Shown here piece by piece: positions 1 to 53,869 of a DNA stretch of 64,000 nucleotides. The notes below the pieces were generated by a model, which searched no databases, had not been told where the DNA came from, and saw nothing but the letters and a program-made list of their open reading frames with translations. The position numbers were made by a program, and so were the translations under genes. Position 1 is the first letter of the stretch. Each line of letters starts with the position of its first letter. The DNA lies in the IMG/VR virus record IMGVR_UViG_3300044213_000107, positions 1-64,000 of that record; one strand, written 5' to 3'.

Positions 1-389
1 GACAATGCTTCACAACCCAATGCTGGTAGAATAGTTAGTTTGGCTAACTTGCGTCGTTCCATTTCTTTGTAGAACTCAAGTTCTGGGTCATCTTGGGCAA
101 CTAAGGTAGTATGGTCAAATTGATCTTCTAAAATCTTTTTAAGTTCTTTAAGACCGCCATAGTCTGCGGCCCAGTTGCGAACATCTAAATCGTTGGTACC
201 AAAGTAAAACTTCATACTGAACGAATAGCCATGATTTAAATTACAATGACTATCGGCACGCCATTGACGATAAGCACATGGAAATGCGTCGATGTATTCC
301 TTTGTGCTTGTATATTTGTATGATACGGGTCCGCGGTATGGAAGATTGTTTTCTAAGTGTGCGATCAGTTCAGATGCCGATGATTTCAT
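1..389 (-). CDS. queD: 6-carboxy-5,6,7,8-tetrahydropterin synthase (QueD/PTPS family), 3' end outside window
   Basis: Own translation from ATG at 389 with GGAG RBS: ...STKEYIDAFPCAYRQWRADSHCNLNHGYSFSMKFYF...DYGGLKELKKILEDQFDHTTLV; has the C-x3-H-G-Y and FDH motifs of QueD. Absent from the ORF track because truncated. Confidence 0.85.
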   Translation of the reverse strand, partial: MKSSASELIAHLENNLPYRGPVSYKYTSTKEYIDAFPCAYRQWRADSHCNLNHGYSFSMKFYFGTNDLDVRNWAADYGGLKELKKILEDQFDHTTLVAQDDPELEFYKEMERRKLAKLTILPALGCEAL

Positions 390-426
390 GCTGTTTCTCC
401 TATGTTAAATTTTAGCATAGGCGGCG

Positions 427-462
427 GAGTTTGTATACCGGGACGACGCTCTAAAGTCCGGT
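427..462 (-). ncRNA. preQ1-I-like riboswitch candidate in the queD leader
   Basis: ACCGG-ACUUUAGAGCGUCGUC-CCGGU-AUACAAA-CUC: 5-bp stem, loop ending in C, A-rich tail whose CUC can pair with loop GAG (H-type pseudoknot). Followed by a CCUAUG..CAUAGG hairpin (399-421) overlapping the queD RBS. Confidence 0.5.
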
Positions 463-472
463 TGTGGCTAAG

Positions 473-1021
473 TCAGCAATAACTATAGCCGGGCGTATTG
501 TTTCGCAACCGTTCCCTTAGTGTATCCTTGGATATTTTTAAGGCTTTCGCGGCGTAGTTAGCACATTCAAAAACGCCAATTGGTGTACTAACTTTTTTAG
601 CACGAGGGTTGTTACCTCCTGCTTTTTGTTTTTTATATAAATCAATAGTCTCGGGCCTATGGGTCTTACCATAAAAAGAGTTTTGTTCTTTGATCTTACC
701 CCAATTTGGATTATTTTCTTTTTTCATACCGGGACTTCCGGGCGCCTTGCCATCCTTGCCATTTTCGGGTCTTAAATTTGCCCACTCCTTAGACTCTACA
801 ATATTGTTTTTTTCTGAAAAATCTAAAGCAAATTCTTCACATAACTCTGGATCAGTAAACTCCCACACATTTATGGTGTCAATATCTTTGCCGTGAGTTT
901 TGAGATGACGCCTCCAATATTTTCCAGAACCTAGATAAACATATGGATCTTTTGTAACAGTCATACCAAAATATTTTAATCCTGTGATTTTATGTTGTTT
1001 AACATATAGATAAATTTTCAT
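473..1021 (-). mobile_element. Free-standing GIY-YIG (Seg-like) homing endonuclease with NUMOD3-type motif
   Basis: N-terminal IYLY..KITGLKYFG..YLGSG and E..WANL motifs; NSFYGKTH NUMOD3-like repeat; C-terminal HTH; own TAAATA promoter and AGGAG RBS. Confidence 0.85.
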
Positions 1022-1050
1022 AGATATCTCCTATGTTTATTTATCTAATT

Positions 1051-1077
1051 AGCGGGATGAATGCCGGAAAGGCCGCT
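1051..1077 (-). repeat. Diverged second copy of the queD leader stem-loop, upstream of the endonuclease
   Basis: AGCGG-CCUUUCCGGCAUUCAUC-CCGCU resembles ACCGG-ACUUUAGAGCGUCGUC-CCGGU with compensatory stem changes; both leaders end in AACATAGGAGA. Confidence 0.55.
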
Positions 1078-1088
1078 TGAAAAAATAT

Positions 1089-1424
1089 TTATCCTTCACG
1101 CTCATAGCGATCCATTGTTTCTTGCATGTTGTGCGATTCAACTTGATCCATGAACTTTAATAAGAACATGCTAGCAAGGGAGGCTGCCGAACCGGGGATT
1201 CTTAATAAGATATGACCTGTACCATCCTTCATATGATAACTGGGTTTGGCGCTGCCTAGTTGTACATGCCGAGTTTGTTGTTTACGTCCACGATGATCAT
1301 ACACTTCCGTAAGCCATGCATTTCCACCTTGTAGTACAAACCAATGACCTATGTCATCAGTGAGTTCTCGGACCGTGATGGTTATTTCATAATTAACTCG
1401 GCACCCTGGGGGCAATTGTATCAT
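1089..1424 (-). CDS. Hypothetical protein (start revised to MIQLPPG)
   Basis: ATGA overlap with upstream gene stop. Confidence 0.6.
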   Translation of the reverse strand: MIQLPPGCRVNYEITITVRELTDDIGHWFVLQGGNAWLTEVYDHRGRKQQTRHVQLGSAKPSYHMKDGTGHILLRIPGSAASLASMFLLKFMDQVESHNMQETMDRYEREG

Positions 1425-1876
1425 TGTGCACGAGCCTTTAGATATTCTTCGTGTTGTACCCAACCACTTTTTGTTAAGAAACCCCATTCTCTACGATGTG
1501 GGCCAGGTATAAACAGTGTCCATGTTTCTACTGTGGGATCTAGTTCGATACGATGATAACTGGTAGCACCACAGGTTCTAAAACTACCAGTACCACGCCA
1601 TGTGCAGGTTTCTGTTATTTTGTTGCCTTGGGCATCAAATACTGGCATCCATTCATAGTAGCCACCTTTTAAGATAACAGTGGCATAAGGCCAAGGATGA
1701 TCATGCACGTCATCGGGATCTGACTTAAGAAACTTATGCACAAATATATTAAAAGGGAACCAGGTGCGATCTTTAAGGAATACATAATATCTTTCTAAAT
1801 AGGGTTCATTATCAACCCTGTCCATAATAATACGTTTGCGGCCTAAGCGTTCAAGTAGAGTTAGAAATCGATTCAT
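1421..1876 (-). CDS. Cupin-fold protein
   Basis: HDHPW...ILKGGY.E and YHRIEL motifs; start revised to MNRF after AAGG RBS. Confidence 0.7.
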   Translation of the reverse strand: MNRFLTLLERLGRKRIIMDRVDNEPYLERYYVFLKDRTWFPFNIFVHKFLKSDPDDVHDHPWPYATVILKGGYYEWMPVFDAQGNKITETCTWRGTGSFRTCGATSYHRIELDPTVETWTLFIPGPHRREWGFLTKSGWVQHEEYLKARAQ

Positions 1877-2645
1877 TGCGTACCTTTTGGTTTGCTGTGT
1901 TGACTGCTTCAAAAAGACCCAATGTGGTATTGGTTTTTTGTAGTGTAGCAATTATAGCACATACATCCTTGGGAAAGCAAGCACCACCGTAGCCAAAAGC
2001 GCCATCTGGACCAGGAACCGCAAAATGACTGGAGCCCATGCGGGTATCATGTTGTAAAGCTGCCACAAAATCTGTCCAATTTGCTCCAACCGCTTGACTC
2101 AACTGGAAAAATTGATTCATGAACATTACTTTTGCAGCCAAAAAAGTATTCATAAAGTACTTGATCATGCTGGCGGTTGTAATGTCTGTTATTGTTAATG
2201 GAACCTTGGTGTTCATGGCACTGGCTTCAAACACATGCATAATATCCTGAGCTCCAGCATTTTGTCCAATAACAATAAATTCAGGATTAAGATAATCTTG
2301 TATTGCCCGACTTGCAACTAAAAACTCTGGTACATGATACACGTTTGGTTGTGGGTAATGTTGCCAAAATTCCGGTTCTGCAGTACTTTTGACAATAATA
2401 GGTCCTGTGTAATTTAACTCTAATAGACAATCTACTACTGATTCTACGATACTGGTATTACAAGATCCATCTGAGTTACTAGGTGTTGGTACGCATACAA
2501 AAATTACATCAGCGTTAATCAGATGTTCTATATCAACTCCGCCTGCGATTGCAGGATCGCAGAATAAAACACTGTGACTGGTTCCTAGATAACTGGCCTG
2601 TACTGCTTTTCCAACATAACCTAACCCAACTATGCCTATGTTCAT
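1851..2645 (-). CDS. ugd: UDP-glucose/GDP-mannose dehydrogenase family (short form)
   Basis: GLGYVG Rossmann motif, VCVPTP, KST, PEFL, KY..N.FLA.K, GYGGACFPKD. Confidence 0.9.
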   Translation of the reverse strand: MNIGIVGLGYVGKAVQASYLGTSHSVLFCDPAIAGGVDIEHLINADVIFVCVPTPSNSDGSCNTSIVESVVDCLLELNYTGPIIVKSTAEPEFWQHYPQPNVYHVPEFLVASRAIQDYLNPEFIVIGQNAGAQDIMHVFEASAMNTKVPLTITDITTASMIKYFMNTFLAAKVMFMNQFFQLSQAVGANWTDFVAALQHDTRMGSSHFAVPGPDGAFGYGGACFPKDVCAIIATLQKTNTTLGLFEAVNTANQKVRNESISNST

Positions 2646-3275: not shown

Positions 3276-4019
3276 TTAGCATGAATATTCTTGTTGCAGT
3301 TTTACGTTATCAAAAAACTCTTTTTTAGTTCCAGCATCGTCTTTAAATGCACCCTTGAGTACAGTAGTTTGCGTAAGACTGCTTTTGGCCATAATGCCAC
3401 GGTTCTCACAACATCCATGTGTCATTTGCATATAAACGCCTACGTCTGCGGCTCCTGTGGCACGTTGGATTTCCCGAGCAATTTCATTACAAAGTTCCTC
3501 CTGGAGAGTACCTCTTCGGGCACACCATTGTGCGATTCTTGAATATTTACTAAGTCCGATAAGTGTTTGTGCGGCAATAATACCAATATAAGCAACACCA
3601 ACCACAGGCTGGTGATGATGGCTGCAAACGCTACGCAACTCGCTGCGAACAACAAGCATGCCTTCGTAACGTTCCGACGAATCATTGGGAAATGCGGTTG
3701 GGTCTGGTCCTGGTTCATATCTTCCACTCATTATTTCTGTTATGTACATTTTAGCAAGACGTCTAGCAGTCCCTCGACTGCTAGGGTCAGTTTCACGATC
3801 AATAAGCAAACGATCAAGCACTAGCTCAAATGCTTCTGCGGCTTCGTTGATTAGACGTTCTTTATCGCCTTCTTTAAGATACTCGCTGATGTTGTCGTTG
3901 GCCCAAAAGCGTTTACCTTCACGGCGCATTTTAAAACGTAAATAATCGCCTAAATATGCTTCTTCGTATCCGCCATCTCCGGCCATGGCGTCTAATCCTG
4001 TTTCTGTTTTATCTGTCAA
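3276..4019 (-). CDS. folE: GTP cyclohydrolase I
   Basis: SVCSHHHQP, GLSKYSRI, LQEEL, HGCCENRG motifs; start revised to TTG at 4019 following GGAG RBS. Confidence 0.95.
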   Translation of the reverse strand: MTDKTETGLDAMAGDGGYEEAYLGDYLRFKMRREGKRFWANDNISEYLKEGDKERLINEAAEAFELVLDRLLIDRETDPSSRGTARRLAKMYITEIMSGRYEPGPDPTAFPNDSSERYEGMLVVRSELRSVCSHHHQPVVGVAYIGIIAAQTLIGLSKYSRIAQWCARRGTLQEELCNEIAREIQRATGAADVGVYMQMTHGCCENRGIMAKSSLTQTTVLKGAFKDDAGTKKEFFDNVKLQQEYSC

Positions 4020-4048
4020 TTTAATTCTCCGAGTTACTGACGTGGATG

Positions 4049-4648
4049 TCATTTTGTGATTGTAATTTGTCGCAAATCTGGGTAAGCAACAAATTGTGGT
4101 TCTGGATTTAGATCTTTAACTCCTTCGAGTAAAGCCAAACCTTGTTCTGCTTCTTCAATAGTAGGCTTGTAGTGATAACCAATTCTAAAAGTTTTCTGCG
4201 ACTCCCATGGACTAACAGTTAAATCTCTACCATCGTATCTCATTTGTAAGATAGCCTTATATGCTTCTGCATCATCTAATAGTATAGCACCACCACGACC
4301 TATGTGTAAAGGTTTTCCATGTCCAAAACTTACACATTGTATTTGTCCTGGTCTGTACATACCACGTTGCAACAATCTGGCACTATCCCAAATTCTAGTT
4401 TTTCTAAAATGATATTCACCCACCCATTGTTTTTCGTCTTTGGTTTCGTAATAAAATTTAATACCTAGTTTATGCATTAACATTGGAATACTTAGGTATG
4501 TAAAAGGTGTAAATGCACAAAATTCTACACGATCGTAGATAAAGCATAATTCAAGCGCATGCGTACAACAATCAGTCATGATTGCGTAAGGTGCTCCTGT
4601 GAATTCTGCTAATGCTTGTTCGAACTTTAATATTTTTTCAAAACTCAT
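4049..4648 (-). CDS. DegT/DnrJ/EryC1/StrS PLP-dependent aminotransferase-like (short, lacks C-terminal small domain)
   Basis: FEQALAEFTGAPYAI..DCCTHALEL, WDSA, SFGHGKPL..GRGGAI. Confidence 0.8.
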   Translation of the reverse strand: MSFEKILKFEQALAEFTGAPYAIMTDCCTHALELCFIYDRVEFCAFTPFTYLSIPMLMHKLGIKFYYETKDEKQWVGEYHFRKTRIWDSARLLQRGMYRPGQIQCVSFGHGKPLHIGRGGAILLDDAEAYKAILQMRYDGRDLTVSPWESQKTFRIGYHYKPTIEEAEQGLALLEGVKDLNPEPQFVAYPDLRQITITK

Positions 4649-5004
4649 TTTTGACTATCACCTTTGCTTATTCTATAGTTATCTTCCACCGAGTCGGGGG
4701 TACTAACTTCAATAACAGTACCGGCGTCAATGCAAACTAGTTGATGAGGTAGTCCGGGAGGATTATGCCAAACTGAACCCACAGCCAACTCTTGTTCGTG
4801 TAGTTCTGCGGTAGCGGTATCTATCCAACGTACAGTAAACCGACCGCTTTGTACATACCAAGTTTCATCTTTGGTTAAGTGAAAATGCATACTAAATCTA
4901 GCACCAGTATCAAAATTCATCATTTTTCCGCAGTAGAGATCATTGGTGGCCCATATAAATTCAGAGCCCCATCCTTTTTTTACTTGTCCTGTTAGTCTTG
5001 TCAT
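4645..5004 (-). CDS. Cupin, sugar-phosphate isomerase-like
   Basis: KGWGSE, SMHFH..KDETWYV, PHQL, EVST. Confidence 0.75.
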   Translation of the reverse strand: MTRLTGQVKKGWGSEFIWATNDLYCGKMMNFDTGARFSMHFHLTKDETWYVQSGRFTVRWIDTATAELHEQELAVGSVWHNPPGLPHQLVCIDAGTVIEVSTPDSVEDNYRISKGDSQK

Positions 5005-5972
5005 TTTTTTGTATACCATTTATATGCACTGTCAATGATGGTAGAAACATCACTGTATACGGGTTTCCACCCTAGCCCTGTGTTGGCTAAATCAGCATTG
5101 GCTATTAACTTTGCTGGGTCTCCTTCACGTGGTGGCCCTACATATGTTTCTAGACCATATTTCTCTTTAACGTAGTTGACTATTTCTAAATTGCTTATTC
5201 CCGAAGTTGTTCCAAGATTGACTCGATAAGCACCATTTTGCGGATAGTCATCTAGTAAAAAATTAGTGGCCGCAATATGTGCCCATGCTAGATCCCACAC
5301 GTGTATATAATCCCTTATGCATGTACCATCTGGTGTTGCATAATTTCCGCCGTTGATAGTAAACGGTTGTTTATTAATACTGGCTTCTAGAGCACGTGCA
5401 ATGATGTGTGTGGCACCAGGTTCTTGTCCGAGATCGAAGTGCTCGGGCTCGGCACCTGCGGCATTAAAATATCTAAAGGCAACACTATGGATGCCGTATG
5501 CGTGATTATAATCGTCGAGAATATATTCAATCATGGCCTTGGTGCGACCATAGGGACTAATAGGGTTTATTGCGGCCTTTTCGTCGATGGGCATCACTTC
5601 GGGTTCACCGTAAACACTAGCACTACTGCTAAACAGTATAACAGGTTTCTTGTCCATGGTTCGTATCATATTCAACATAGCAATGGTTTTTGCTACATTG
5701 TTATGATAGTATTCGCCAGGGTCCATGACACTGGGTCCTACTAAACTTGTGCCTGCACAATGCACAACAACATCAGGTTCTAGTGTATAGATTGTAGCAA
5801 GTCCTTCGGTACTGGCAAAGTCACCAATATGATAACCATCACAATCTTTTAGAGTATGATCTCGTTGAACACGATCAACGATTACAACACTGTCACCGTT
5901 TTGTTTAAATGCACGAGCTACATGACTACCAATGTAGCCACATCCACCTGTTACTACTATCTTACGTGTCAT
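5001..5972 (-). CDS. galE: UDP-glucose 4-epimerase
   Basis: TGGCGYIGSH, FSSSASVYG, YGRTK, RYFNAAGA, DGTCIRDYIHV. Confidence 0.93.
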   Translation of the reverse strand: MTRKIVVTGGCGYIGSHVARAFKQNGDSVVIVDRVQRDHTLKDCDGYHIGDFASTEGLATIYTLEPDVVVHCAGTSLVGPSVMDPGEYYHNNVAKTIAMLNMIRTMDKKPVILFSSSASVYGEPEVMPIDEKAAINPISPYGRTKAMIEYILDDYNHAYGIHSVAFRYFNAAGAEPEHFDLGQEPGATHIIARALEASINKQPFTINGGNYATPDGTCIRDYIHVWDLAWAHIAATNFLLDDYPQNGAYRVNLGTTSGISNLEIVNYVKEKYGLETYVGPPREGDPAKLIANADLANTGLGWKPVYSDVSTIIDSAYKWYTKK

Positions 5973-6148
5973 AGTTTTGTTTTTAATTCAGCGATTTCGT
6001 CTTTTAAACGAAGTTTTTCTTTTTTAAGTGCTACAATCTGCTCATGATTGCCGTATTGATTTTCTTCAGTGATAATCTTACGATCAAGTGCATCATGCTT
6101 TTCTTGTAGGTGCTTAATATGATTTTGAATCTTTTTTGGTGTGATCAT
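5969..6148 (-). CDS. YdcH/DUF465-like small coiled-coil protein (59 aa, below ORF-track cutoff)
   Basis: MITPKKIQNHIKHLQEKHDALDRKI...LKKEKLRLKDEIAELK. Confidence 0.75.
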   Translation of the reverse strand: MITPKKIQNHIKHLQEKHDALDRKIITEENQYGNHEQIVALKKEKLRLKDEIAELKTKL

Positions 6149-6152
6149 TGTA

Positions 6153-6344
6153 TCAACTATCGAGTTCCATTGTGTTCCATTCTCGGACTACAGCCAGCAT
6201 ATCATCTTCTGTATTGCAAAGAACTTTACAGTTTTTCCAATCGTTTTCGTCATCACGCCCGCCTACTTCGACCATAAAGCCGTTATCGTATCGGTTAATG
6301 GTGATAGTTTCGTTTACTTTTTCTAATTTGCTTAATTGTGCCAT
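6153..6344 (-). CDS. Hypothetical protein
   Basis: AGGAG RBS and CTAAATA upstream. Confidence 0.7.
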   Translation of the reverse strand: MAQLSKLEKVNETITINRYDNGFMVEVGGRDDENDWKNCKVLCNTEDDMLAVVREWNTMELDS

Positions 6345-6358
6345 TTTACTCTCCTTGA

Positions 6359-7549
6359 TTAATATTTAGATTCTAATGTGTGTCGACGATAGTCAATAGA
6401 CGTGCGCAACCATTGTTCTCCTGTGCCTTCTATAATATCACAGATGCGATCAATAGTTCCGTCAGTCCAATCACTGATCTGACCTTGATTGGGATGACGA
6501 TCATGTAATAGTGGCCATAACTTATTCATGGCATCAGCAATGCTCCAAGGTATATACAAACGCTCAGGATCATTTGAAAAAGTTTCGGGGAAACTGCGAT
6601 AAGCAGGGTAAAGGACATTACATCCCAAAGTGTCGGCTTCGGATACAGTATTGCTAACCCAATCTTGCAAAGCACAATTAAATAACACACGAGTATCGTT
6701 AAGAAGATTATAGTAGTCATTCTTTTCTAAATCCTCATAAATTGTTAATAGTCCACGTGCTTGTAGATCTCTAGTACGTGCCATGTAACTGTCGTTATTT
6801 GACTTTAGCTTACTACCTGAAAAAACTGCAAACTCCACAGGATAGTTGGGATATACTGCAGCCCAACGTTCAATCAAGTCCATAAAAAAGTCTGGTGACT
6901 TTTCTTGATCCCAACGTGCCGCAAAGCCTACACGCATTTTTCGTTCCATAAATGGCTTTAGTTCTCCAGACACACGACCACGCACTTCTGCTTTGCCAAA
7001 TGCTAGACCAGAGATGTTGTAGATTGGACAATCCCAACCAGCAACCTTCATATGCATGACCATTTCTTCGTTGGATGCTAGTACAGCACCACCTGAATCA
7101 CGAACTAGTTCGCAGACCATTTTCTCATACAAGCCCATCCACTTGCTCATACCCCAAACATGTACAAAATCATCTGGATCAATTGACTGAGCAAGGCAAC
7201 GAACATATATCCTAGGGCGCAGATGGTTAGGAACCTGATTGATAATGTAAGGAAGGCTTTCGATGCCGGGCTGAAACATGTCTTCAAAATATATAATATC
7301 ATCATGCGTGACTTCTCCGGCTTTCATCATACGCACAAGATTCATAAGTTGGCTCATACCAAAGTATGTGCGACCATGTGCGTCCAAGACCTGTCCGGTG
7401 ACAATTGCTTGATCATTACTAAGCGTATCACCGGGCACTAACAAGTAGTCAATGCCGCGACGCCGAAAGACTGCTTCATTCCAGTCTTGTAGTTGTAGAG
7501 TGTAACGAGCCTTGTATGGCTCTAACCCCATGTAATATAGTTTACGCAT
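6359..7549 (-). CDS. GT-B (family 1/4-like) glycosyltransferase
   Basis: Start revised to MRKLYYMGLE; FAARWDQEK, D-W-V-S-N-T-V-S-E-A..LGC..LYP (E-x7-E-like) motifs. Confidence 0.75.
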   Translation of the reverse strand: MRKLYYMGLEPYKARYTLQLQDWNEAVFRRRGIDYLLVPGDTLSNDQAIVTGQVLDAHGRTYFGMSQLMNLVRMMKAGEVTHDDIIYFEDMFQPGIESLPYIINQVPNHLRPRIYVRCLAQSIDPDDFVHVWGMSKWMGLYEKMVCELVRDSGGAVLASNEEMVMHMKVAGWDCPIYNISGLAFGKAEVRGRVSGELKPFMERKMRVGFAARWDQEKSPDFFMDLIERWAAVYPNYPVEFAVFSGSKLKSNNDSYMARTRDLQARGLLTIYEDLEKNDYYNLLNDTRVLFNCALQDWVSNTVSEADTLGCNVLYPAYRSFPETFSNDPERLYIPWSIADAMNKLWPLLHDRHPNQGQISDWTDGTIDRICDIIEGTGEQWLRTSIDYRRHTLESKY

Positions 7550-8345: not shown

Positions 8346-9505
8346 GTTGCATAGATGTCCGAAAATACTTTTTTACTATCTAGATTCCGAGATAAATCAG
8401 TTTCCTCAAAAAATTTAAATATATCGTGATGTTCAATAACACCAGTCTTTAAAAAATCAATTAGTACCCGAACATTAGTACCAAATCGGTCTTCTCCAGC
8501 ATATCTTTCAGCAATTTCTATAGTATCTTTGATATATGTTTTTGGTAACATCCTCGGATCTAAATACGAAGGGTGGTGACCACCGTTAATATAGTTAACA
8601 TTTAAATTTTCTCTTGTAAATCCTAAAGAAAATAAGTAGTCAACAAAATTAAAAAAACTTTTTGTGTTTAAGGCTAGATATACCATATTAAATGCTATTT
8701 CTTGTGTTTTAGGTATATTATTTTTTAAAAATTTTAAATTAGTATCAAAAGTTGACCATACTCCGGGATATCTAATGTATTCATATCTCTCGTACATGTC
8801 TTCGGCACTAATTAACCACATTACATTCTTAAATTTTAATAACAGATTAAAAATTTTATTATTTTCAATCATTGAAAGATTTGTGTTAACTAATATTTTA
8901 CAATTAGGGTTAACTTCTAATAATCTTTCAAGAATTATTTCATTCTCTTTAATTAATAATGGTTCGCCGCCTGCCATATAAATTTTTTCTAATGTTGCAG
9001 CATTATCGCAAAAATACTGTATTAATTTAGAAATTGCAGCATCGTCGCTAACAGGGAATATCTTTTTTTCTGCAGCCCAAGTTGAGCTTAAATCCTCACT
9101 ACAATATACACATGCATAATTACACGTGTTTCTAAATCTTAAATCTGCGTATCTAAGCTCAAATTTATCAGGATTATCATAAATTGTTTTATCGAGATGC
9201 TTAAAAATGTTAAGCATAATATATCTTAAATAATTGTTGATATTTCCAGCATTATCTCCGATCGCAAGATTTTTTGGCGGATAACATCTACTGCACCCGT
9301 CGACTCGTTTGCCATCTAACATATTTTTACGTATACTGATGTTATAATCGCTGTTAATTATTTCTTCAATGGCATTATTTTTAATATTTCCAAGTCGATT
9401 TCTTGCAATACAACAAGTATCAGTAAGTCCATCTGGTTCTACGTATATGCTGGTCCATGGTAATGGACAAAAGGCATCATTGCCCCAATATTGATCTTCA
9501 GTCAT
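8336..9505 (-). CDS. Radical SAM protein with N-terminal Cys-rich (Twitch/SPASM-like) domain
   Basis: CNYACVYC, GGEPL, N-terminal CPLPW..CC..CSRC. Confidence 0.9.
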   Translation of the reverse strand: MTEDQYWGNDAFCPLPWTSIYVEPDGLTDTCCIARNRLGNIKNNAIEEIINSDYNISIRKNMLDGKRVDGCSRCYPPKNLAIGDNAGNINNYLRYIMLNIFKHLDKTIYDNPDKFELRYADLRFRNTCNYACVYCSEDLSSTWAAEKKIFPVSDDAAISKLIQYFCDNAATLEKIYMAGGEPLLIKENEIILERLLEVNPNCKILVNTNLSMIENNKIFNLLLKFKNVMWLISAEDMYERYEYIRYPGVWSTFDTNLKFLKNNIPKTQEIAFNMVYLALNTKSFFNFVDYLFSLGFTRENLNVNYINGGHHPSYLDPRMLPKTYIKDTIEIAERYAGEDRFGTNVRVLIDFLKTGVIEHHDIFKFFEETDLSRNLDSKKVFSDIYATRQ

Positions 9506-16662: not shown

Positions 16663-17931
16663 TTAGTAATAGATACTATAAATTTTCTTAACATCTAAAT
16701 CTGGATGAAAGCGTTGTACTTGGTCTAAACAAAAATGTATTATAGCATAATCATCTGCAAATTTACTAGAGCGTGTTAGTTCTTTCATATAACTATGGGC
16801 AAATCTAATTTTTTCATAGTCTGATCCAGTGAAGTCGCAGTCTAAATTATCGGCAACTTGATCTGCGACTGATTGCGGAACGCTGGCAATACCAAAGTTA
16901 ATGTCTGCGTGCCAGACTAAATTTGGTTCAGCAATACTGAAACGATTTTTGGGATAACGCTTAACCAAGTACCGCCAGAAATCCATAACATGATGAAAGT
17001 TTAAACTTGTAAGTGTAGTAATTACATTTACCTTAACTGACTTACCTAGCAGTTGTTGTTCTAGTTGCCATGCCATGAGTAAATCAACATTAGATTCTAT
17101 GCTAGGCCAATCACTTGGTGTTCTTTGGATGTAGGCTATTTCGTCCATGCCATCTAGGCTTAGATTAAGTTCTATAGTTTGATATTTGCTCAGAGTATCA
17201 AGCAAGCGACGATTAATATTTGTACAGTTGGTACTGGGCCAAACTTTTATCTGTTGACTGTATCCTAGTTCTACTAGTCGTTCTAAAAAATCTATGTTTT
17301 CTTTAACCAGTGTGGGTTCGCCACCTGTGATAAACAAACTGCGAATACTGTTATAATGGTCTGCAAATACCCGTTCTAGTCCAATTGACACGGGCCAATC
17401 AAACACAGTATTAAAATCTGTGTCGTGATTAAGTGGTGGAATGATACCTGGAACAAATGTTAGTTCCTGTGGTGTGTCGACAAAGCGTTTAAAAAACTTA
17501 CCAAAGTTTGTGCTAAATGCAGGATTACACATTTTGCATGCAAGGTTGCAAAGATTCCCTGAACTAACTTGAAAGTCAAATGCTAACTTAGATAAGCGAC
17601 CATTATTTTCTTTGGCTTCTGTGATACGGTCTTGTATAGATTCAACGGGAATTCTATTTAATGTTTTAAGTCGTAGACTATTGCCGGCGGCAGCTTCTTG
17701 TTCCCAACACACACGACATGCTTCGGGCTTTTCTCCGACAATTAAACTTTGTCTAAGGCTTTGTAGCCGATCACTGTTCCAAGCTTCTGTTAGTGTGTGC
17801 GTTGCAATGTTGTAGACATCACCGTTGGCATCCGTGTGCTCGCCGCTTATTGCCGCACAACAATATTTTATTTCACCGTTGGGTTCGATGTCAGTGTGTG
17901 CAAACGGATAAGGACAAATCGTTGAACTCAT
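16663..17931 (-). CDS. Radical SAM protein (Twitch/SPASM-like)
   Basis: CNLACKMC, TGGEPT, SLDG; N-terminal CPYPF..CC..CRVC. Confidence 0.9.
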   Translation of the reverse strand: MSSTICPYPFAHTDIEPNGEIKYCCAAISGEHTDANGDVYNIATHTLTEAWNSDRLQSLRQSLIVGEKPEACRVCWEQEAAAGNSLRLKTLNRIPVESIQDRITEAKENNGRLSKLAFDFQVSSGNLCNLACKMCNPAFSTNFGKFFKRFVDTPQELTFVPGIIPPLNHDTDFNTVFDWPVSIGLERVFADHYNSIRSLFITGGEPTLVKENIDFLERLVELGYSQQIKVWPSTNCTNINRRLLDTLSKYQTIELNLSLDGMDEIAYIQRTPSDWPSIESNVDLLMAWQLEQQLLGKSVKVNVITTLTSLNFHHVMDFWRYLVKRYPKNRFSIAEPNLVWHADINFGIASVPQSVADQVADNLDCDFTGSDYEKIRFAHSYMKELTRSSKFADDYAIIHFCLDQVQRFHPDLDVKKIYSIYY

Positions 17932-21360: not shown

Positions 21361-22502
21361 TTTAGTAGCTGATACGCTTCGGGAAATGTATCGGCAAAAT
21401 TCTCTTTACGTAGGGAATCATACCCATCGGTAACACGTTTAAATTCTTGTAATAACTCCGGCGAATTATCGACACCCATCTCAAGCTGTGGAATCAAATG
21501 TTTCACAGCAGTATTGGTTAATTTATTTTTAACAGCTTGTTTCATTGAATCAGGTGCTATACGCATATTTAAGTGCAATGGTCTATGCAGTATATTAAAT
21601 CCACATGTTATTCCACGTTGGTTAAAGTACTGCCATATATCACTGGCATAATATATATTTAACAAACTTACAGTAACACATACACTTAAAACAACATTTG
21701 GATTTTCTGCAGCTAACTGTTGATATTTTGATAAGTTAACTTCAATCTCTGACCATTTTGCAGGATAACGCATATACTCAAATTGTTTGCCAATGCCATC
21801 CATGCTAATACCTATATCAACACTACGAAACTTTTTAAAAATTTCATAGTAATCATCTCTCCATACGGTTCCGTTAGTGTTTATGTGTATATCTACCGTA
21901 TCGGCTAAAGGCAGTTGGCTTGCAGCAGCAAGTAGTGACCAAAGAGGTTCAATTAGCAACGGCTCGGCGCCGTACAGGTCATAATAAACTATATCTTGAG
22001 CCCATTGATTTAATGTAGCCCAGGTTGCACTATCATCGGCAAAACTTTGTTGCGCACCACGAAACTGTTCTAGATAAACGGGATACGATGTTTCATCCGC
22101 TTCCACATGATAGTAATCACGAATCCAACGACTGCTCGTATGAGGGTTACAGTGCCTACAAGCAAGGTTGCACAAATTACCGGGCTTGAGCATAATAACA
22201 CGAGGATGGTCCGTAGGTATAACATTGGCAAACTGTTCATTACTTAATAACCTTTTACTGCGCCTTCCGGCTGCTTCTTCGTCCCAGCAGTCTTGGCAGT
22301 TGTGATGTTGCTGATTTGATTTTAATGCACTGGCAATTTCTTGTCTTGTGGGACTCGCCCATGCGTCTTCTAGCGTATGTTGATCAAGTCGAATAAGTGA
22401 TTGATCGTGATGTTGAAACCAAACACGACTTTGATTACACATTGATGCATAGCCACCATTTTGTGTACTTAGTCCTAGATCGGCTAACACACAATAGGTC
22501 AT
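21351..22502 (-). CDS. Radical SAM protein (Twitch/SPASM-like)
   Basis: CNLACRHC, GAEPL, INTNG, SMDG; start revised to MTYC. Confidence 0.9.
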   Translation of the reverse strand: MTYCVLADLGLSTQNGGYASMCNQSRVWFQHHDQSLIRLDQHTLEDAWASPTRQEIASALKSNQQHHNCQDCWDEEAAGRRSKRLLSNEQFANVIPTDHPRVIMLKPGNLCNLACRHCNPHTSSRWIRDYYHVEADETSYPVYLEQFRGAQQSFADDSATWATLNQWAQDIVYYDLYGAEPLLIEPLWSLLAAASQLPLADTVDIHINTNGTVWRDDYYEIFKKFRSVDIGISMDGIGKQFEYMRYPAKWSEIEVNLSKYQQLAAENPNVVLSVCVTVSLLNIYYASDIWQYFNQRGITCGFNILHRPLHLNMRIAPDSMKQAVKNKLTNTAVKHLIPQLEMGVDNSPELLQEFKRVTDGYDSLRKENFADTFPEAYQLLKHP

Positions 22503-23635
22503 TGAAATTCGGGCCAAAGATCGGCAAATTTTAGTGGACTATCGGGCCAGTATGTGTGTTCTTGTTCTGCATGCCAATCGTATAAGGTTTGAGTTTCTGC
22601 ATCGGGATTGTTGGCCTTAACTAAATTAGCAGCTTGCTCTTTAAAAAATTCTGCGGACTGTGGATTATATTTGATACTTTTAATTAATTCTCGTGCAGAT
22701 TGTTGCATAAATTTGTTAGGCAAACTAAATGCACTCAATCTATGTGGATGTGTTAGTTCTGCCCAACGTATTGGTGGCAGTTGGTTGTCTGCAAAATATT
22801 CATGTATGCTGCTAATATCTAAACAATTATACACACTAAACTGACCAGTTACATTAACACTTTGATGTGGTGCAGCATCTTTTAATGTTTGTATGTTGTG
22901 CAGCATCAACTGCCAGTCTGCCCCATGCCGCACATATTCAAAACGATCTTCTATGGTTTCAAAACTTATATCCCAGGTAACATTGTCAAGCTCGGTTAGT
23001 CTACGAAATATTTTATTTTTTTCTAATGGAACACTAAGATTGGTTATTACATTTATGTGTACTGAATTGTCAATGACATCTAGTAGTAGTTCGTTTTCTT
23101 TTTGTAACAACGGCTCACCACCAAGTAGTCCTAGATTTTTAATTGTGCTGCGATGCTGAACAATATAATCCATTATGCCTTGGATGTCAGCATAGTCTGC
23201 ACGTTCAAGTGGGTGTCCTTTTAATTGAGCCCAAATACTGCTAGCTTCTGACCCACAGTATACACAACTTAAATTACAGGTATTTGACCAACGAATGTCG
23301 AGATTTTGTAGTGGTTGATCTTTTAAACTAACAATAGGTATAGTTCGACGTTCGGCAATATCGTTATACCATGTGCGTTCTGTTACAGGAGTGTGTCGTT
23401 CGCGATCAATGCAAATGCGGCAATTATCATGTTCTTGATTATTAACAATAGCTGTTTTAATTTCATCTAGTAGACTATTGTTAATTGCAGAATCTAAACT
23501 AACTTCTCGCAGATTTCCCAATTCTGTTTGGCCAGCACAACAGGTCTTATAAACACCCAACGGGTTTATATGTATATTTGTCCAAGGAGCATAGCAAAAG
23601 TTTGACCCAATATCCGGGGTTAAATTGATTGTCAT
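22499..23635 (-). CDS. Radical SAM protein (Twitch/SPASM-like)
   Basis: CNLSCVYC, GGEPL; CYAPW..CC..CRIC. Confidence 0.9.
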   Translation of the reverse strand: MTINLTPDIGSNFCYAPWTNIHINPLGVYKTCCAGQTELGNLREVSLDSAINNSLLDEIKTAIVNNQEHDNCRICIDRERHTPVTERTWYNDIAERRTIPIVSLKDQPLQNLDIRWSNTCNLSCVYCGSEASSIWAQLKGHPLERADYADIQGIMDYIVQHRSTIKNLGLLGGEPLLQKENELLLDVIDNSVHINVITNLSVPLEKNKIFRRLTELDNVTWDISFETIEDRFEYVRHGADWQLMLHNIQTLKDAAPHQSVNVTGQFSVYNCLDISSIHEYFADNQLPPIRWAELTHPHRLSAFSLPNKFMQQSARELIKSIKYNPQSAEFFKEQAANLVKANNPDAETQTLYDWHAEQEHTYWPDSPLKFADLWPEFQ

Positions 23636-43928: not shown

Positions 43929-45164
43929 TTAAACCTCTAAAAATGGGAACAGTTCTTTCCAGTTTGTTCCACGACGTCGATCTAATTCATCAAAATATGT
44001 TACAAATCTTTTTATTTGAAATTCGTCCCTTTGTTTATTTTCTATAGTTTTAAATAACCCTAGATAATGATCATAATATGCAAGATTATTATTTTTCATA
44101 AAATCTATAATATTTTCAAAATCTTTACGCCAAAAATCTCCGCCCCATATTCCGAGATCTAAAAATGTTTTACAGGGATCTGTGTTAAGTTGAAATTTAA
44201 AATAATGTGGTTTAATATTCCATTGTAGTGCTTTTTCTAACAATGGAACTGTTTCTTTAATAGTAGTAGCAACTAAAGTTTGATTTAACCCAATATCAAT
44301 ATCTACGTTATGATTTAAACAATATTCGATATTACGTTCAAACACGGTTAAGTCTAATCCAAATCTAGTGAATTCGCTCATTGGTCCCCAACCATCAATA
44401 CTTCCTGTAATATGTGGTTTACCTAATAAACCACGTTCAGTAAGATTTGCCAATCGATCTATTTGTTTTTCAAATATTTTTTCTTTTACCATTAGATTAC
44501 TGATAATATTTAAAATTAAATCTGGGCTTGGGTGCTCTTCAAAAAAATCAAATAAAAGATCAATTTCTTTTTCTAAAAATGGTTCTCCACCTAATAAATG
44601 CAATCTTTTTAATGCTTTATGATTATTACCAAGCCAGATAAAAAATTCATCTACATATTGTTCTCTATTAGGCAATTCTGGTTCGTAGTCATTTATCAAG
44701 ATGTCTAATTTTTTATTATAATAGTGACCAAATTTTTGATTTTCTTTTTGAATGCTCGAACTTAACATAGGATCACAGTAAACACACTTTAAATTGCATG
44801 TGTTGTTAACAAATATTTCTACTAATCGCGGTGTAACCGATAATGCAACAGGATTAGTTTCAAATTCTGGCGGAGTCCAATCATCATGGTCTTTGCCTAG
44901 ATGTATCAATCTATCACTGGTTCCCCCGGCTGCTTCTACATCTCTGCAATATTCGCATCCATGCCCTGGCCATTGTCCGTTTAACATTAATGTTCTTTGC
45001 CGTATTTTTTCCGGTGTGTTATTAAAATTTTGAAAATCTTCAATAGGAACAGAGTGTAATTCTACTCTATGACAGTTCGCAGTCTTTCCGTTTGTTAGCC
45101 ATAGTGTGCTCCAGGTCCACTTGTTCAAACACGCGGCTTCATTTCGAATTGGAAATTTTGTCAT
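43929..45164 (-). CDS. Radical SAM protein
   Basis: CNLKCVYC, GGEPF, SIDGWG. Confidence 0.9.
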   Translation of the reverse strand: MTKFPIRNEAACLNKWTWSTLWLTNGKTANCHRVELHSVPIEDFQNFNNTPEKIRQRTLMLNGQWPGHGCEYCRDVEAAGGTSDRLIHLGKDHDDWTPPEFETNPVALSVTPRLVEIFVNNTCNLKCVYCDPMLSSSIQKENQKFGHYYNKKLDILINDYEPELPNREQYVDEFFIWLGNNHKALKRLHLLGGEPFLEKEIDLLFDFFEEHPSPDLILNIISNLMVKEKIFEKQIDRLANLTERGLLGKPHITGSIDGWGPMSEFTRFGLDLTVFERNIEYCLNHNVDIDIGLNQTLVATTIKETVPLLEKALQWNIKPHYFKFQLNTDPCKTFLDLGIWGGDFWRKDFENIIDFMKNNNLAYYDHYLGLFKTIENKQRDEFQIKRFVTYFDELDRRRGTNWKELFPFLEV

Positions 45165-50653: not shown

Positions 50654-51879
50654 TCCAGCCAAGGGAATAATTCGCGCCAGTTAGTTCCACGGCGGCGATC
50701 CATTTCATCTAAATATACCCGTAGTTGATGAATACGATTAAGATCTCTGGGATGATTAGCAATTTTCATTTTAATGCCTAACATATGTTCTTTGTGTCCG
50801 CGTTGCCTAAATGTGTCGTCGGGCATTAAAGCAAGTATCCGATCAAAATCTTCGTCAAATACCCCAGCACCAAACACTTCGGGGTTTAGCAAATTTGGAT
50901 CAGTTACATTCATAAAACTGTGATGAATTTCGTGTTGCTCTTGCCACACATTCATTCTTTCTATTAGATCTGGTAATGTTTTGATAGTTAAACTACTAAT
51001 GGCGTGATTAATAGCCAACATAGCCCAGTCTTGTTTTAATAAATAATTCCAGTTTTTTTGCCAATCATCTAAATTTAGTCCCCAACGTGCGTATTCCTGT
51101 TGTGGGCCCCAGGCATCTAAACTGGCAGTTATCTGTAATCGTTTAATTTTATTGTTATCTATTAGATTATGAAAGCGATCAATAATTTCTACAAACTTTG
51201 CATACGGTACTTTTAAATTACTAACAATATTAAACGCTAGATCCGGATTTGGATGAGCATCCCAAAAATCTATACTTTGTTCTAGTTCGGGCTGAAAAAA
51301 TGGCTCTCCGCCCAGCACATGATAAAAATGTAGTTTACGACCGTGTTCTTCTAACCAGCGCCAAAGACCTGCAACCATTTCATCATAATGCGGTGCAGGC
51401 TCCCAGGAGCCTTCGATTCTTACACCATCCTTTTCAAATCGGCCAAACCGACGATTTTCTTCTTCCCATTTACTGCTAAACCACGGGCCGCAGTATAAAC
51501 AGCTCATGTTGCAGACATTGTTAAAATACACCTCCAGTAGTCTCGGTGTAATTTCTGTAGAAGTTATATCACCTTGTTCAACTTCGTCGGGAATCATCTC
51601 TTCAGCAAACATCAGTTGCATTTTGCGATCGCTGGTTCCACCTGCGGCTTCGATATCTCTACAGTATTCGCACCCGTTGCCAGGCCACTCACCTTGCAAC
51701 ATTTTGGCTCTCGCAGCCATCTTGGCGTCAGTATTGTGAAATCTATGAATAGTATCTTTGTTTATAGGATCTTGGTCTACACGATGGCAACTACTTGTAG
51801 TACCACGGCTTAAGAATACTGTGCTCCAAGACCATTTTAATACACAAGCAGTATCGGTTTTGATTGGAAATGTTTTCAT
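50641..51879 (-). CDS. Radical SAM protein (close paralog of 43929-45164)
   Basis: CNMSCLYC, GGEPF; shared FPI...AC..KW.WST, CHRV, WPG.GCEYCRD.EAAGGTSDR. Confidence 0.9.
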   Translation of the reverse strand: MKTFPIKTDTACVLKWSWSTVFLSRGTTSSCHRVDQDPINKDTIHRFHNTDAKMAARAKMLQGEWPGNGCEYCRDIEAAGGTSDRKMQLMFAEEMIPDEVEQGDITSTEITPRLLEVYFNNVCNMSCLYCGPWFSSKWEEENRRFGRFEKDGVRIEGSWEPAPHYDEMVAGLWRWLEEHGRKLHFYHVLGGEPFFQPELEQSIDFWDAHPNPDLAFNIVSNLKVPYAKFVEIIDRFHNLIDNNKIKRLQITASLDAWGPQQEYARWGLNLDDWQKNWNYLLKQDWAMLAINHAISSLTIKTLPDLIERMNVWQEQHEIHHSFMNVTDPNLLNPEVFGAGVFDEDFDRILALMPDDTFRQRGHKEHMLGIKMKIANHPRDLNRIHQLRVYLDEMDRRRGTNWRELFPWLDQNF

Positions 51880-52813: not shown

Positions 52814-53869
52814 ATGATCAAATACAAAGATATAAGAAGTATTCAATTTGAAATTTCTACTAGATGTAATGCGGTATGCCCGATGTGTCCGAGGAACGCA
52901 TCGGGTTATCAAACTGACACAGGATTTCCTTTAACAGAACTAACATTAACTGACGTAAAAAAGATTTTGCCAATTGAGTTCATACTGCAGTTAAATCATA
53001 TACTGTTTAATGGTAATTTTGGAGATTTTATCGCCGCACGTGATGCTTTAGAAATTGTCAGATATATAACTGAATCAAACAAAAATTTATCAATAATGAT
53101 AAACACCAATGGATCAGCAAGATCAACAAAATGGTGGCAAGAACTTGGAAGTTTAAAAAATATACAAGTGGGATTTGATTTAGATGGCCTAAAAGATACT
53201 CACCATTTGTATAGAAGAAATACCAATTGGGACACAATTATAAAAAATGCTCAGGCATTTATGTCTGCTGGTGGTCATGCAATATGGAGGTTTATACATT
53301 TTAAACATAACGAACATCAAATAGATGACTGTAAAAAATTAGCAAAAGAACTAGGATTTGCACGCTTTGATATATTGTACGGTGGGAGAACTGATTCTCC
53401 TGTGTACAATATAAAAACAGGCAAGTATGAATATACCATTGGTATAGAAATGGCCGATATACCAAAAACTGCGTTAGATCATCAATTACATAAATTTAAT
53501 TATAGATCACCAGAGAAAAGAATAGAATTTTATAAAACAGTTAAAGTATCAGAATCTATTGATTGCCTTGCTAAAAAACAAAAAGAAATATATATTACTG
53601 CCACAGGTGATGTGTATCCGTGCTGTTATTTTGGGCACTATCCAACTATACCTGAATATAAACAATATTGGCAAATGGATAATTTTGCTATTACACCATT
53701 AATAAAAAACAATAATGCATTAGAATATGGAATAGAAGAAGCAATTAAATGGTTTAATTCTGTTGAAGAATCGTGGAGTAAACAATCTTATCTAGAAGGA
53801 AGATTGTATAAATGTGATGAGTTCTGCGGAGTGAACTCGGTGATTGATACTAAACGTCATCGGTTATAA
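52814..53869 (+). CDS. Radical SAM protein with C-terminal SPASM/Twitch
   Basis: CNAVCPMC, NTNG, DGL, C...I...G.V.PCC. Confidence 0.9.
   Translation: MIKYKDIRSIQFEISTRCNAVCPMCPRNASGYQTDTGFPLTELTLTDVKKILPIEFILQLNHILFNGNFGDFIAARDALEIVRYITESNKNLSIMINTNGSARSTKWWQELGSLKNIQVGFDLDGLKDTHHLYRRNTNWDTIIKNAQAFMSAGGHAIWRFIHFKHNEHQIDDCKKLAKELGFARFDILYGGRTDSPVYNIKTGKYEYTIGIEMADIPKTALDHQLHKFNYRSPEKRIEFYKTVKVSESIDCLAKKQKEIYITATGDVYPCCYFGHYPTIPEYKQYWQMDNFAITPLIKNNNALEYGIEEAIKWFNSVEESWSKQSYLEGRLYKCDEFCGVNSVIDTKRHRL

Follow-up and report, generated by a model that had tools for sequence, protein, structure and literature searches.

The leader of a QueD-like gene at one end of an uncultured phage contig carries one copy of a strongly conserved, covarying RNA pseudoknot, of which we found 191 instances in IMG/VR phage contigs, every one at a QueD-type (7-deazaguanine pathway) gene. 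The element resembles a preQ1-I riboswitch in outline, but it was not detectable as a member of that or any other Rfam family, and on present evidence it is best regarded as a candidate for a new, phage-specific riboswitch class whose ligand and direction of regulation are inferred from sequence alone (probability roughly 0.58). The analysis began with a 64,000-nucleotide stretch (hereafter the window), which is the first 64 kb of the 260,723-bp IMG/VR virus contig IMGVR_UViG_3300044213_000107, rated about 74% complete; the same sequence is present in freshwater metagenomes. Genes at this end run on the minus strand, and the element lies in the 83-nt spacer between a 182-aa ORF and a QueD-like ORF that runs off the contig end at base 1. 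An initial annotation had described a preQ1-I-like hairpin, an A-rich tail and a hairpin covering the ribosome-binding site here, and had proposed a variant aptamer, possibly sensing preQ0 or another deazaguanine or guanine derivative, for feedback control of the supply of a DNA-modifying base. When read on the minus strand, these described elements are indeed present in the sequence. The features of the locus are as follows.

416 to 464, minus strand: complete aptamer-like pseudoknot, matching positions 1-48 of a covariance model built from leaders of other phages
458 to 462, minus strand: P1 5' strand, ACCGG, pairing with 441-437
442 to 457, minus strand: 16-nt loop enclosed by P1
450 to 457, minus strand: L1, with a variable first base followed by an invariant C-U
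444 to 449, minus strand: P2 5' strand, GCGUCG, in which U446 lies opposite C424 (the conserved U.C mismatch)
442 to 443, minus strand: L2, UC, in which C442 is the invariant C next to the P1 3' strand
437 to 441, minus strand: P1 3' strand, CCGGU
427 to 436, minus strand: L3 (the tail), AUACAAACUC, an A-rich linker with invariant U, A, A, A and a terminal UC
421 to 426, minus strand: P2 3' strand, CGCCGC
399 to 421, minus strand: RBS-sequestering hairpin, in which CCUAUG (421-416) pairs with CAUAGG (404-399); it shares C421 with P2, and its loop holds an extended -10-like TGCTAAAAT
397 to 401, minus strand: Shine-Dalgarno sequence (SD) AGGAG of the QueD-like gene, whose first bases are covered by the 3' arm of the hairpin
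1 to 389, minus strand: QueD-like ORF (PTPS family, HGY subtype), AUG at 389-387, truncated by the contig end
473 to 1021, minus strand: predicted free-standing homing endonuclease gene (182 aa) inserted inside the motif
1050 to 1077, minus strand: truncated aptamer remnant (P1, loop and P1 3' strand only), upstream of the endonuclease gene
3276 to 4052, minus strand: GTP cyclohydrolase I (FolE), the first enzyme of the same pathway, 3 kb upstream on the same strand

As a single sequence, the leader did not fold better than its shuffles (z = -0.73), and the significance of the structure comes from comparison. At least 587 IMG/VR stretches encode a relative of the QueD-like protein, and nearly all of the best 80 carry the same leader directly upstream. 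A degenerate pattern scan that fixed only two of the five P1 pairs returned at least 120 further loci, of which 113 have a fully paired P1. P1 covaries, occurring as ACCGG/CCGGU, AGCGG/CCGCU, AGUGG/CCACU, AGAGG/CCUCU, UGCGG/CCGCA and AUCGG/CCGAU. The 3' part of the loop pairs with the sequence that follows the A-rich linker, for example GGUG..CA with UG.CACC, GGCG..CA with UG.CGCC, and GACUU.CA with UG.AAGUC, while a CG...CG variant covaries with the tail CCGC; a U.C mismatch is always kept. In the window this pairing joins 449-444 with 426-421.

On an ungapped alignment of 44 distinct leaders, the two-helix pseudoknot was 90.3% paired, as compared with 32-50% when the partners were slid, and the covariation score was 0.422, as compared with <=0.078 for the slid versions. 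Nine of 12 pairs showed changes on both sides; within P2, 6 of 7 pairs covaried and 84% were paired. G.U pairs occur in P2, so the signal is RNA and strand-specific. A second alignment, made with the covariance model, misplaced insertions in long loops and was therefore used for P1 only; on its 88 distinct sequences P1 was 98.6% paired, with changes on both sides at 4 of its 5 pairs. The five variable P2 positions paired 4.17 of 5 with their own tail, whereas tails swapped among sequences gave a mean of 2.69 and a maximum of 3.02 over 200 permutations. Fifteen columns of the 44-sequence alignment are invariant: the two G-C pairs that close P1 (G6, G7, C23 and C24), C9 and T10 in L1, the C that ends L2 (column 22), T29, A30, A32, A34, T36 and C37 in L3, and G-C at the start of the P2 3' strand. 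Column 8, the first base of L1, varies among A, C and U. A covariance model built from these 44 sequences, all from other phages and without the window, scored 416-464 on the minus strand at 47.3 bits (E 7e-15). The only other hit in the 260-kb genome was 1050-1077 on the minus strand, at 18 bits, matching model positions 3-28 only. The initial annotation had taken this site for a second copy; it has no tail and is a truncated remnant. The annotation had also proposed a GAG/CUC tail-loop pairing. This pairing uses the same loop bases as the supported helix but showed no change on both sides, and it was rejected for lack of covariation.

We next asked which genes the motif accompanies. Of the 191 instances, 188 are directly followed by a QueD-type ORF and the other three have it as the second gene, across many different gene neighbourhoods. 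The window's truncated ORF matches Pfam PF01242 (E 5e-10) but represents a distinct subtype, which carries SHCxxxHGY and (F/Y)RQW in place of the canonical CxxxHGH zinc/catalytic motif and scores only 29.5-32.5 bits against the NCBIfam QueD equivalog model TIGR03367 (29.5 bits for the window ORF), far below the 89.25-bit cutoff for 6-carboxytetrahydropterin synthase. A full-length relative nonetheless matches PHROG 2389, annotated QueD-like, at E 2e-35, and homologues in cultured phages (47-51% identity) occupy the QueD slot in full 7-deazaguanine clusters, such as QueE-QueC-x-QueD-FolE-TGT in Microcystis phage Me-ZS1. Four such cultured-phage loci lack both leader and motif, their genes overlapping the upstream ORFs. 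In the uncultured clade, the neighbours include a QueE-like radical SAM gene (PHROG 2076, E 1.5e-53) and a YhhQ preQ0/preQ1 transporter that scores above its cutoff, as well as methyltransferases and a B12-radical-SAM methyltransferase. The same RNA also precedes a second, canonical HGH QueD lineage, which scores 80 bits against TIGR03367 and is only 32% identical over 79 aa to the window type; the motif was found in 10 of 80 loci of that lineage. The RNA therefore follows the function rather than one protein lineage. The window's FolE matches Pfam PF01227 (E 1e-35), although it scored below the cutoffs of the NCBIfam FolE models. No QueC, TGT/DpdA, QueE-like, YhhQ or cluster-1 protein was found on the 260-kb contig, but this is uninformative since the incomplete contig ends inside queD.

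The motif appears essentially restricted to phages, uncultured and mostly from freshwater. A pattern scan of 185,579 species' genomes gave mostly chance-like matches, with at least two real instances, on MAG contigs that carry the motif plus queD and look phage-derived; they come from a Bacteroidetes bin and, as a 183-kb contig, from a Haliscomenobacter bin. A megablast of the first 3 kb of the window against cultured phages gave no match, and blastn of a leader against cultured phages gave only chance hits. In 37 of 146 unique upstream regions, a sigma-70 promoter matching at >=10/12 positions has a -10 box that ends 6-9 nt (mode 7) before P1, as compared with 1 of 146 in a control window; in the other regions the aptamer follows the stop codon of the previous gene.

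At least three unrelated expression platform sequences were found downstream of the pseudoknot. Type 1, which includes the window, has CCUAUG...CAUAGGAG; type 2 has UGUCRUC...GAUGGCA with an inner anti-SD helix; and type 3 has GUCAUUGUUA...UAACAAUGGC. A covarying variant of the type-1 hairpin, CCUAUA/UAUAGG, occurs in one relative (L170). In each type, the distal part of the P2 3' strand is also the 5' arm of a hairpin that covers the SD and/or the AUG, with the SD lying 20-45 nt downstream. In folding calculations, locking P1 and P2 lowered the stability of that hairpin from about -10 to about -4 kcal/mol, and in 143 of 145 unique leaders at least 3 of the P2 3' nucleotides pair with the RBS/AUG window when the aptamer is left out. 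Stabilizing the pseudoknot should therefore open the ribosome-binding site, which suggests a translational ON switch rather than the feedback-OFF logic initially proposed. This inference is strong for types 2 and 3, where 4-7 nt are shared. It is weak for type 1, where 2 nt are shared in most relatives, and weaker still for the window, where only C421 is shared and the two helices could stack rather than compete. Moreover, an ON switch on a biosynthetic gene is unusual. In addition, the type-1 hairpin loop contains an extended -10-like TGCTAWAAT and L3 resembles a -35 box, and an internal promoter could therefore bypass the aptamer. The idea that the hairpin is a terminator was rejected, as there is no U-tract.

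Since preQ1-I was the identity first proposed, we compared the element with that class in detail. The preQ1-I model RF00522 (gathering score 39 bits) gave no hit at the leader even at E<=10 on stretches of 96-900 nt, and none at the leader of an AGAGG-type relative. Over the whole 260-kb genome it gave only three chance hits elsewhere, at <=15 bits, while control genomes were positive. At gathering thresholds, no Rfam 15 family, including preQ1-II, preQ1-III, SAM-II, SAM-V, fluoride, guanidine-III and THF-II, matched the 64-kb window or 114 kb from 16 relatives, and no family matched the window's leader even at E<=10. In preQ1-I, the ligand pairs with C15, is read by A29 and U6, and stacks on the G5-C16 pair, and mutation of U6 and A29 abolishes activity in the Tte riboswitch (PMC8222354). 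The present element shares with preQ1-I an H-type pseudoknot topology, a 5-bp P1 whose top pair is a conserved G-C, an A-rich L3 of about the length needed to cross a 5-bp P1, and placement before a queuosine/7-deazaguanine pathway gene with apparent control at the level of translation. An invariant C (C442 in the window) abuts the P1 3' strand at the position of C15/C17, although its pairing with a ligand would be by analogy only. However, the equivalents of U6 and A29 are not conserved, the first L1 base being variable and L3 ending in an invariant UC. P2 is 6-12 bp rather than 3-4 bp and contains the conserved U.C mismatch, L1 is longer and L2 is shorter. The SD is not part of P2 but sits in a separate hairpin predicted to compete with it. 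In outline the element resembles a small purine-type pseudoknot riboswitch.

Among other small riboswitches, the H-type pseudoknots of preQ1-II, preQ1-III, SAM-II, SAM-V, fluoride and guanidine-III and the THF-II (folE motif) element are likewise pseudoknotted or compact leaders that regulate translation, but their conserved nucleotides differ. THF-II also senses a pterin and controls folE, which belongs to the same GTP-derived pathway. Translational ON riboswitches such as the adenine add riboswitch likewise share nucleotides between the aptamer's 3' strand and an SD/AUG-sequestering hairpin, but with a different fold. Full-text literature searches found no description of the motif.

Taken together, these data partly support the initial interpretation: a conserved, structured leader RNA with a pseudoknot, a preQ1-like P1, junction C and A-rich L3, and an RBS-occluding hairpin is real and precedes a QueD-type gene, whereas assignment to preQ1-I, the specific tail-loop pairing, the OFF logic and the second copy were not supported. 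We regard the following as established by the comparative analysis: an H-type pseudoknot with a 5-bp P1 closed by two invariant G-C pairs, an L1 beginning N-C-U, a P2 of 6-12 bp whose U.C mismatch lies next to conserved C-G and A-U (or G-C) pairs, an L2 of 2-3 nt ending in an invariant C, a 10-nt A-rich L3 ending in UC, and a distal P2 3' strand that doubles as the 5' arm of the sequestering hairpin. The element shows features expected of riboswitches in general, namely a covarying 5' leader with highly conserved unpaired nucleotides, association with one metabolic function across divergent genes and genomes, and a platform sharing nucleotides with the aptamer. What we infer, rather than demonstrate, is ligand binding and regulation: a small molecule would bind at the P1/P2 junction, probably one with a guanine-like Watson-Crick face read by the invariant C, candidates being a 7-deazaguanine intermediate such as CDG, preQ0 or preQ1, or a pterin such as H2NTP or CPH4. 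Binding would stabilize P2, pull its nucleotides out of the sequestering hairpin and open the ribosome-binding site of queD.

Several alternatives were weighed against this model. The most credible, although still unlikely, is that the pseudoknot is a translational operator recognized by a protein or sRNA, in the manner of the T4 gene 32 leader pseudoknot, with no small-molecule ligand. Conserved single-stranded nucleotides with covarying helices are also typical of protein operators, the element appears confined to phages, and no known ligand class can be assigned; this reading cannot be excluded. However, the motif follows the enzymatic function across two divergent QueD lineages and many neighbourhoods, which is the pattern of metabolite riboswitches, no candidate binding protein is consistently co-located, and the compact junction with an invariant C resembles purine-type pockets. 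A divergent but true preQ1-I riboswitch that binds preQ1 or preQ0 and shuts off QueD as end-product feedback is less likely still; the shared topology and pathway favor it, and the AGAGG.../CCUCU variants look superficially like the B. subtilis aptamer, but the covariance-model results, the pocket residues, the long P2 lacking the SD and the platform overlaps all speak against it.

A constitutive structure that only stabilizes the mRNA 5' end or tunes translation at a fixed level appears improbable. A quarter of the leaders begin right at P1, a position where 5' structures protect mRNAs, and the overlap in the window's platform type is minimal, yet fifteen invariant positions in loops and at the junction exceed what a stabilizing hairpin needs, and the same overlap is rebuilt with unrelated sequences in several platform types. 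Least likely is conservation at the DNA level, as a promoter and/or endonuclease recognition site. A promoter-like TATACA-17-TAAAAT with an upstream TG does lie inside the leader, and a homing endonuclease family always inserts in this sequence. However, promoter-like sites in the region are not above chance (4 found against 3.2 expected), platform types 2 and 3 lack the -10-like box but keep L3, compensatory changes in both helices, including G.U pairs, only make sense in the sense-strand RNA, and the endonuclease is rare, with only 10 related loci found and low depth over its gene.

Riboswitches are rare in phages, and the few known ones are copies of bacterial classes, such as the glutamine riboswitch (PMC9004378). 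A class that exists essentially only in phages, with hundreds of covarying representatives tied to the 7-deazaguanine DNA-hypermodification pathway, would show that phages evolve their own metabolite sensors, would give a direct handle on how they regulate anti-restriction base modification, and would supply a compact aptamer of about 50 nt, possibly for a pathway intermediate for which no sensor is known. Comparison with preQ1-I, which has a similar scaffold outline but different pocket residues, a shorter P2 and apparently opposite logic, would be useful for RNA structure-function work. A more extended and tentative reading is that the class senses a guanine-faced metabolite of the GTP-to-7-deazaguanine route, such as CDG, preQ0 or a pterin intermediate like H2NTP or CPH4, and switches QueD translation ON during infection to time the supply of a DNA-modifying base, and that, because its sequence is so conserved, it has also become the dedicated homing site of an I-TevI-like endonuclease family whose cassette carries a spare intact aptamer. 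Homing into a regulatory RNA element would be a new kind of target for selfish elements.

The 182-aa ORF upstream of the window's aptamer matches PHROG 314, homing endonuclease (E 1.7e-11), with weak NUMOD1 and I-TevI DNA-binding hits in Pfam, the latter below its cutoff (20 against 27 bits); cleavage by its product is inferred. Like the free-standing GIY-YIG/I-TevI-like endonucleases of T4-like phages (seg and mob genes), it is an intergenic ORF with an I-TevI-type DNA-binding region, the same insertion point in every carrier, and a start codon in a small hairpin, but its apparent homing site lies inside a regulatory RNA element rather than a protein gene, and the cassette is flanked by a truncated and an intact copy of that element. 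All ten IMG/VR relatives of the endonuclease (70-92% identity) sit at the same junction, immediately after the P1 3' strand (after CCCGCU-A), whereas most relatives of the locus lack the gene. Each of the ten is preceded by a remnant that matches model positions 3-28 or less, and followed within about 10 nt by a complete aptamer and queD. In freshwater runs, the summed contig depth is high over queD and the leader and low over the endonuclease gene, and one contig joins 408 to 1070, although this evidence is weak as it comes from contigs only. In the window, insertion just after the P1 3' strand has disrupted the normal promoter-proximal arrangement, leaving a truncated remnant upstream and an intact aptamer 10 nt downstream of the endonuclease stop codon. 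The window's remnant is identical in P1 and loop to endonuclease-free relatives such as L143, while its intact copy resembles that of the closest endonuclease carrier, L340; the cassette therefore seems to travel with its own aptamer.

We examined the locus at window 473-1077 (minus strand) together with L340-L349, the loci of relatives of the endonuclease. This comparison revealed a family of I-TevI-like free-standing homing endonuclease genes that always inserts right after the P1 3' strand of the RNA motif, leaving a truncated aptamer upstream and an intact one about 10 nt downstream of its stop codon. The endonuclease's own start codon sits in a small hairpin (CAUAG-gagauau-CUAUG). In freshwater metagenome assemblies (window 1-2000, runs X1-X4), the summed contig depth over queD and the leader was 10-100 times that over the endonuclease gene, and one contig joined 408 to 1070, which is consistent with many endonuclease-free relatives in the same waters. 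One Logan contig extended 95 nt beyond the window's left end. One relative, locus L099 (6-53 and 68-997, plus strand), has a second, degenerate aptamer copy. In this copy P1 is ACCAG/CUGGU, such that the invariant GG/CC is changed in a compensatory way, and the tail reads CUUCGC. It sits in front of a 309-aa SAM-methyltransferase-like ORF that is inserted upstream of the normal aptamer-queD unit.

Within the leader itself, a promoter-like site was located at window 409-437 (minus strand), consisting of TATACA, 17 nt, and TAAAAT with an upstream TG. The -35-like box falls in L3, while the extended -10 box falls in the loop of the RBS hairpin, and TGCTAWAAT is conserved in type-1 platforms. This site could be an internal promoter that bypasses the aptamer. 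The QueD-like proteins encoded behind the motif (window 1-389, minus strand, and relatives, grouped as cluster 0) carry SHCxxxHGY and (F/Y)RQW instead of the canonical CxxxHGH and AAH motifs, so that one zinc-ligand His is replaced by Tyr. The same subtype fills the QueD slot in cultured-phage deazaguanine clusters, and its chemistry may differ from that of bacterial QueD. In the cellular-genome collection, the only real motif instances found were L285, a 183-kb contig in a Haliscomenobacter MAG, and L254, a 5.5-kb contig in a Bacteroidetes MAG, both of which carry the QueD-like gene. These are likely phage contigs that were binned with the MAGs, and they may hint at Bacteroidota hosts.

Upstream of queD, several genes lie on the same strand between window positions 1089 and 5972, as follows:
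1424-1951, minus strand, a cysteine-dioxygenase-like ORF
1854-2645, minus strand, UDP-glucose/GDP-mannose dehydrogenase
3279-4052, minus strand, FolE
4052-4648, minus strand, a DegT-type aminotransferase fragment
5004-5972, minus strand, an NAD-dependent sugar epimerase/dehydratase
These genes suggest a nucleotide-sugar module next to the deazaguanine genes. Just downstream of the regulated queD, relatives carry isocitrate lyase, a YhhQ queuosine-precursor transporter, KDO-8-phosphate synthase and a UvdE endonuclease (L016:4745-5950 and 5980-6600; L052:4689-5528; L034:4652-5662). Finally, the whole 260-kb phage contig was found to encode 14 radical-SAM-domain ORFs of 349-523 aa, which is an unusually large number for a phage; those within the window lie at about 8675-9130, 17131-17349, 21783-22184, 22868-23290, 44301-44810, 51169-51528 and 52850-53320.
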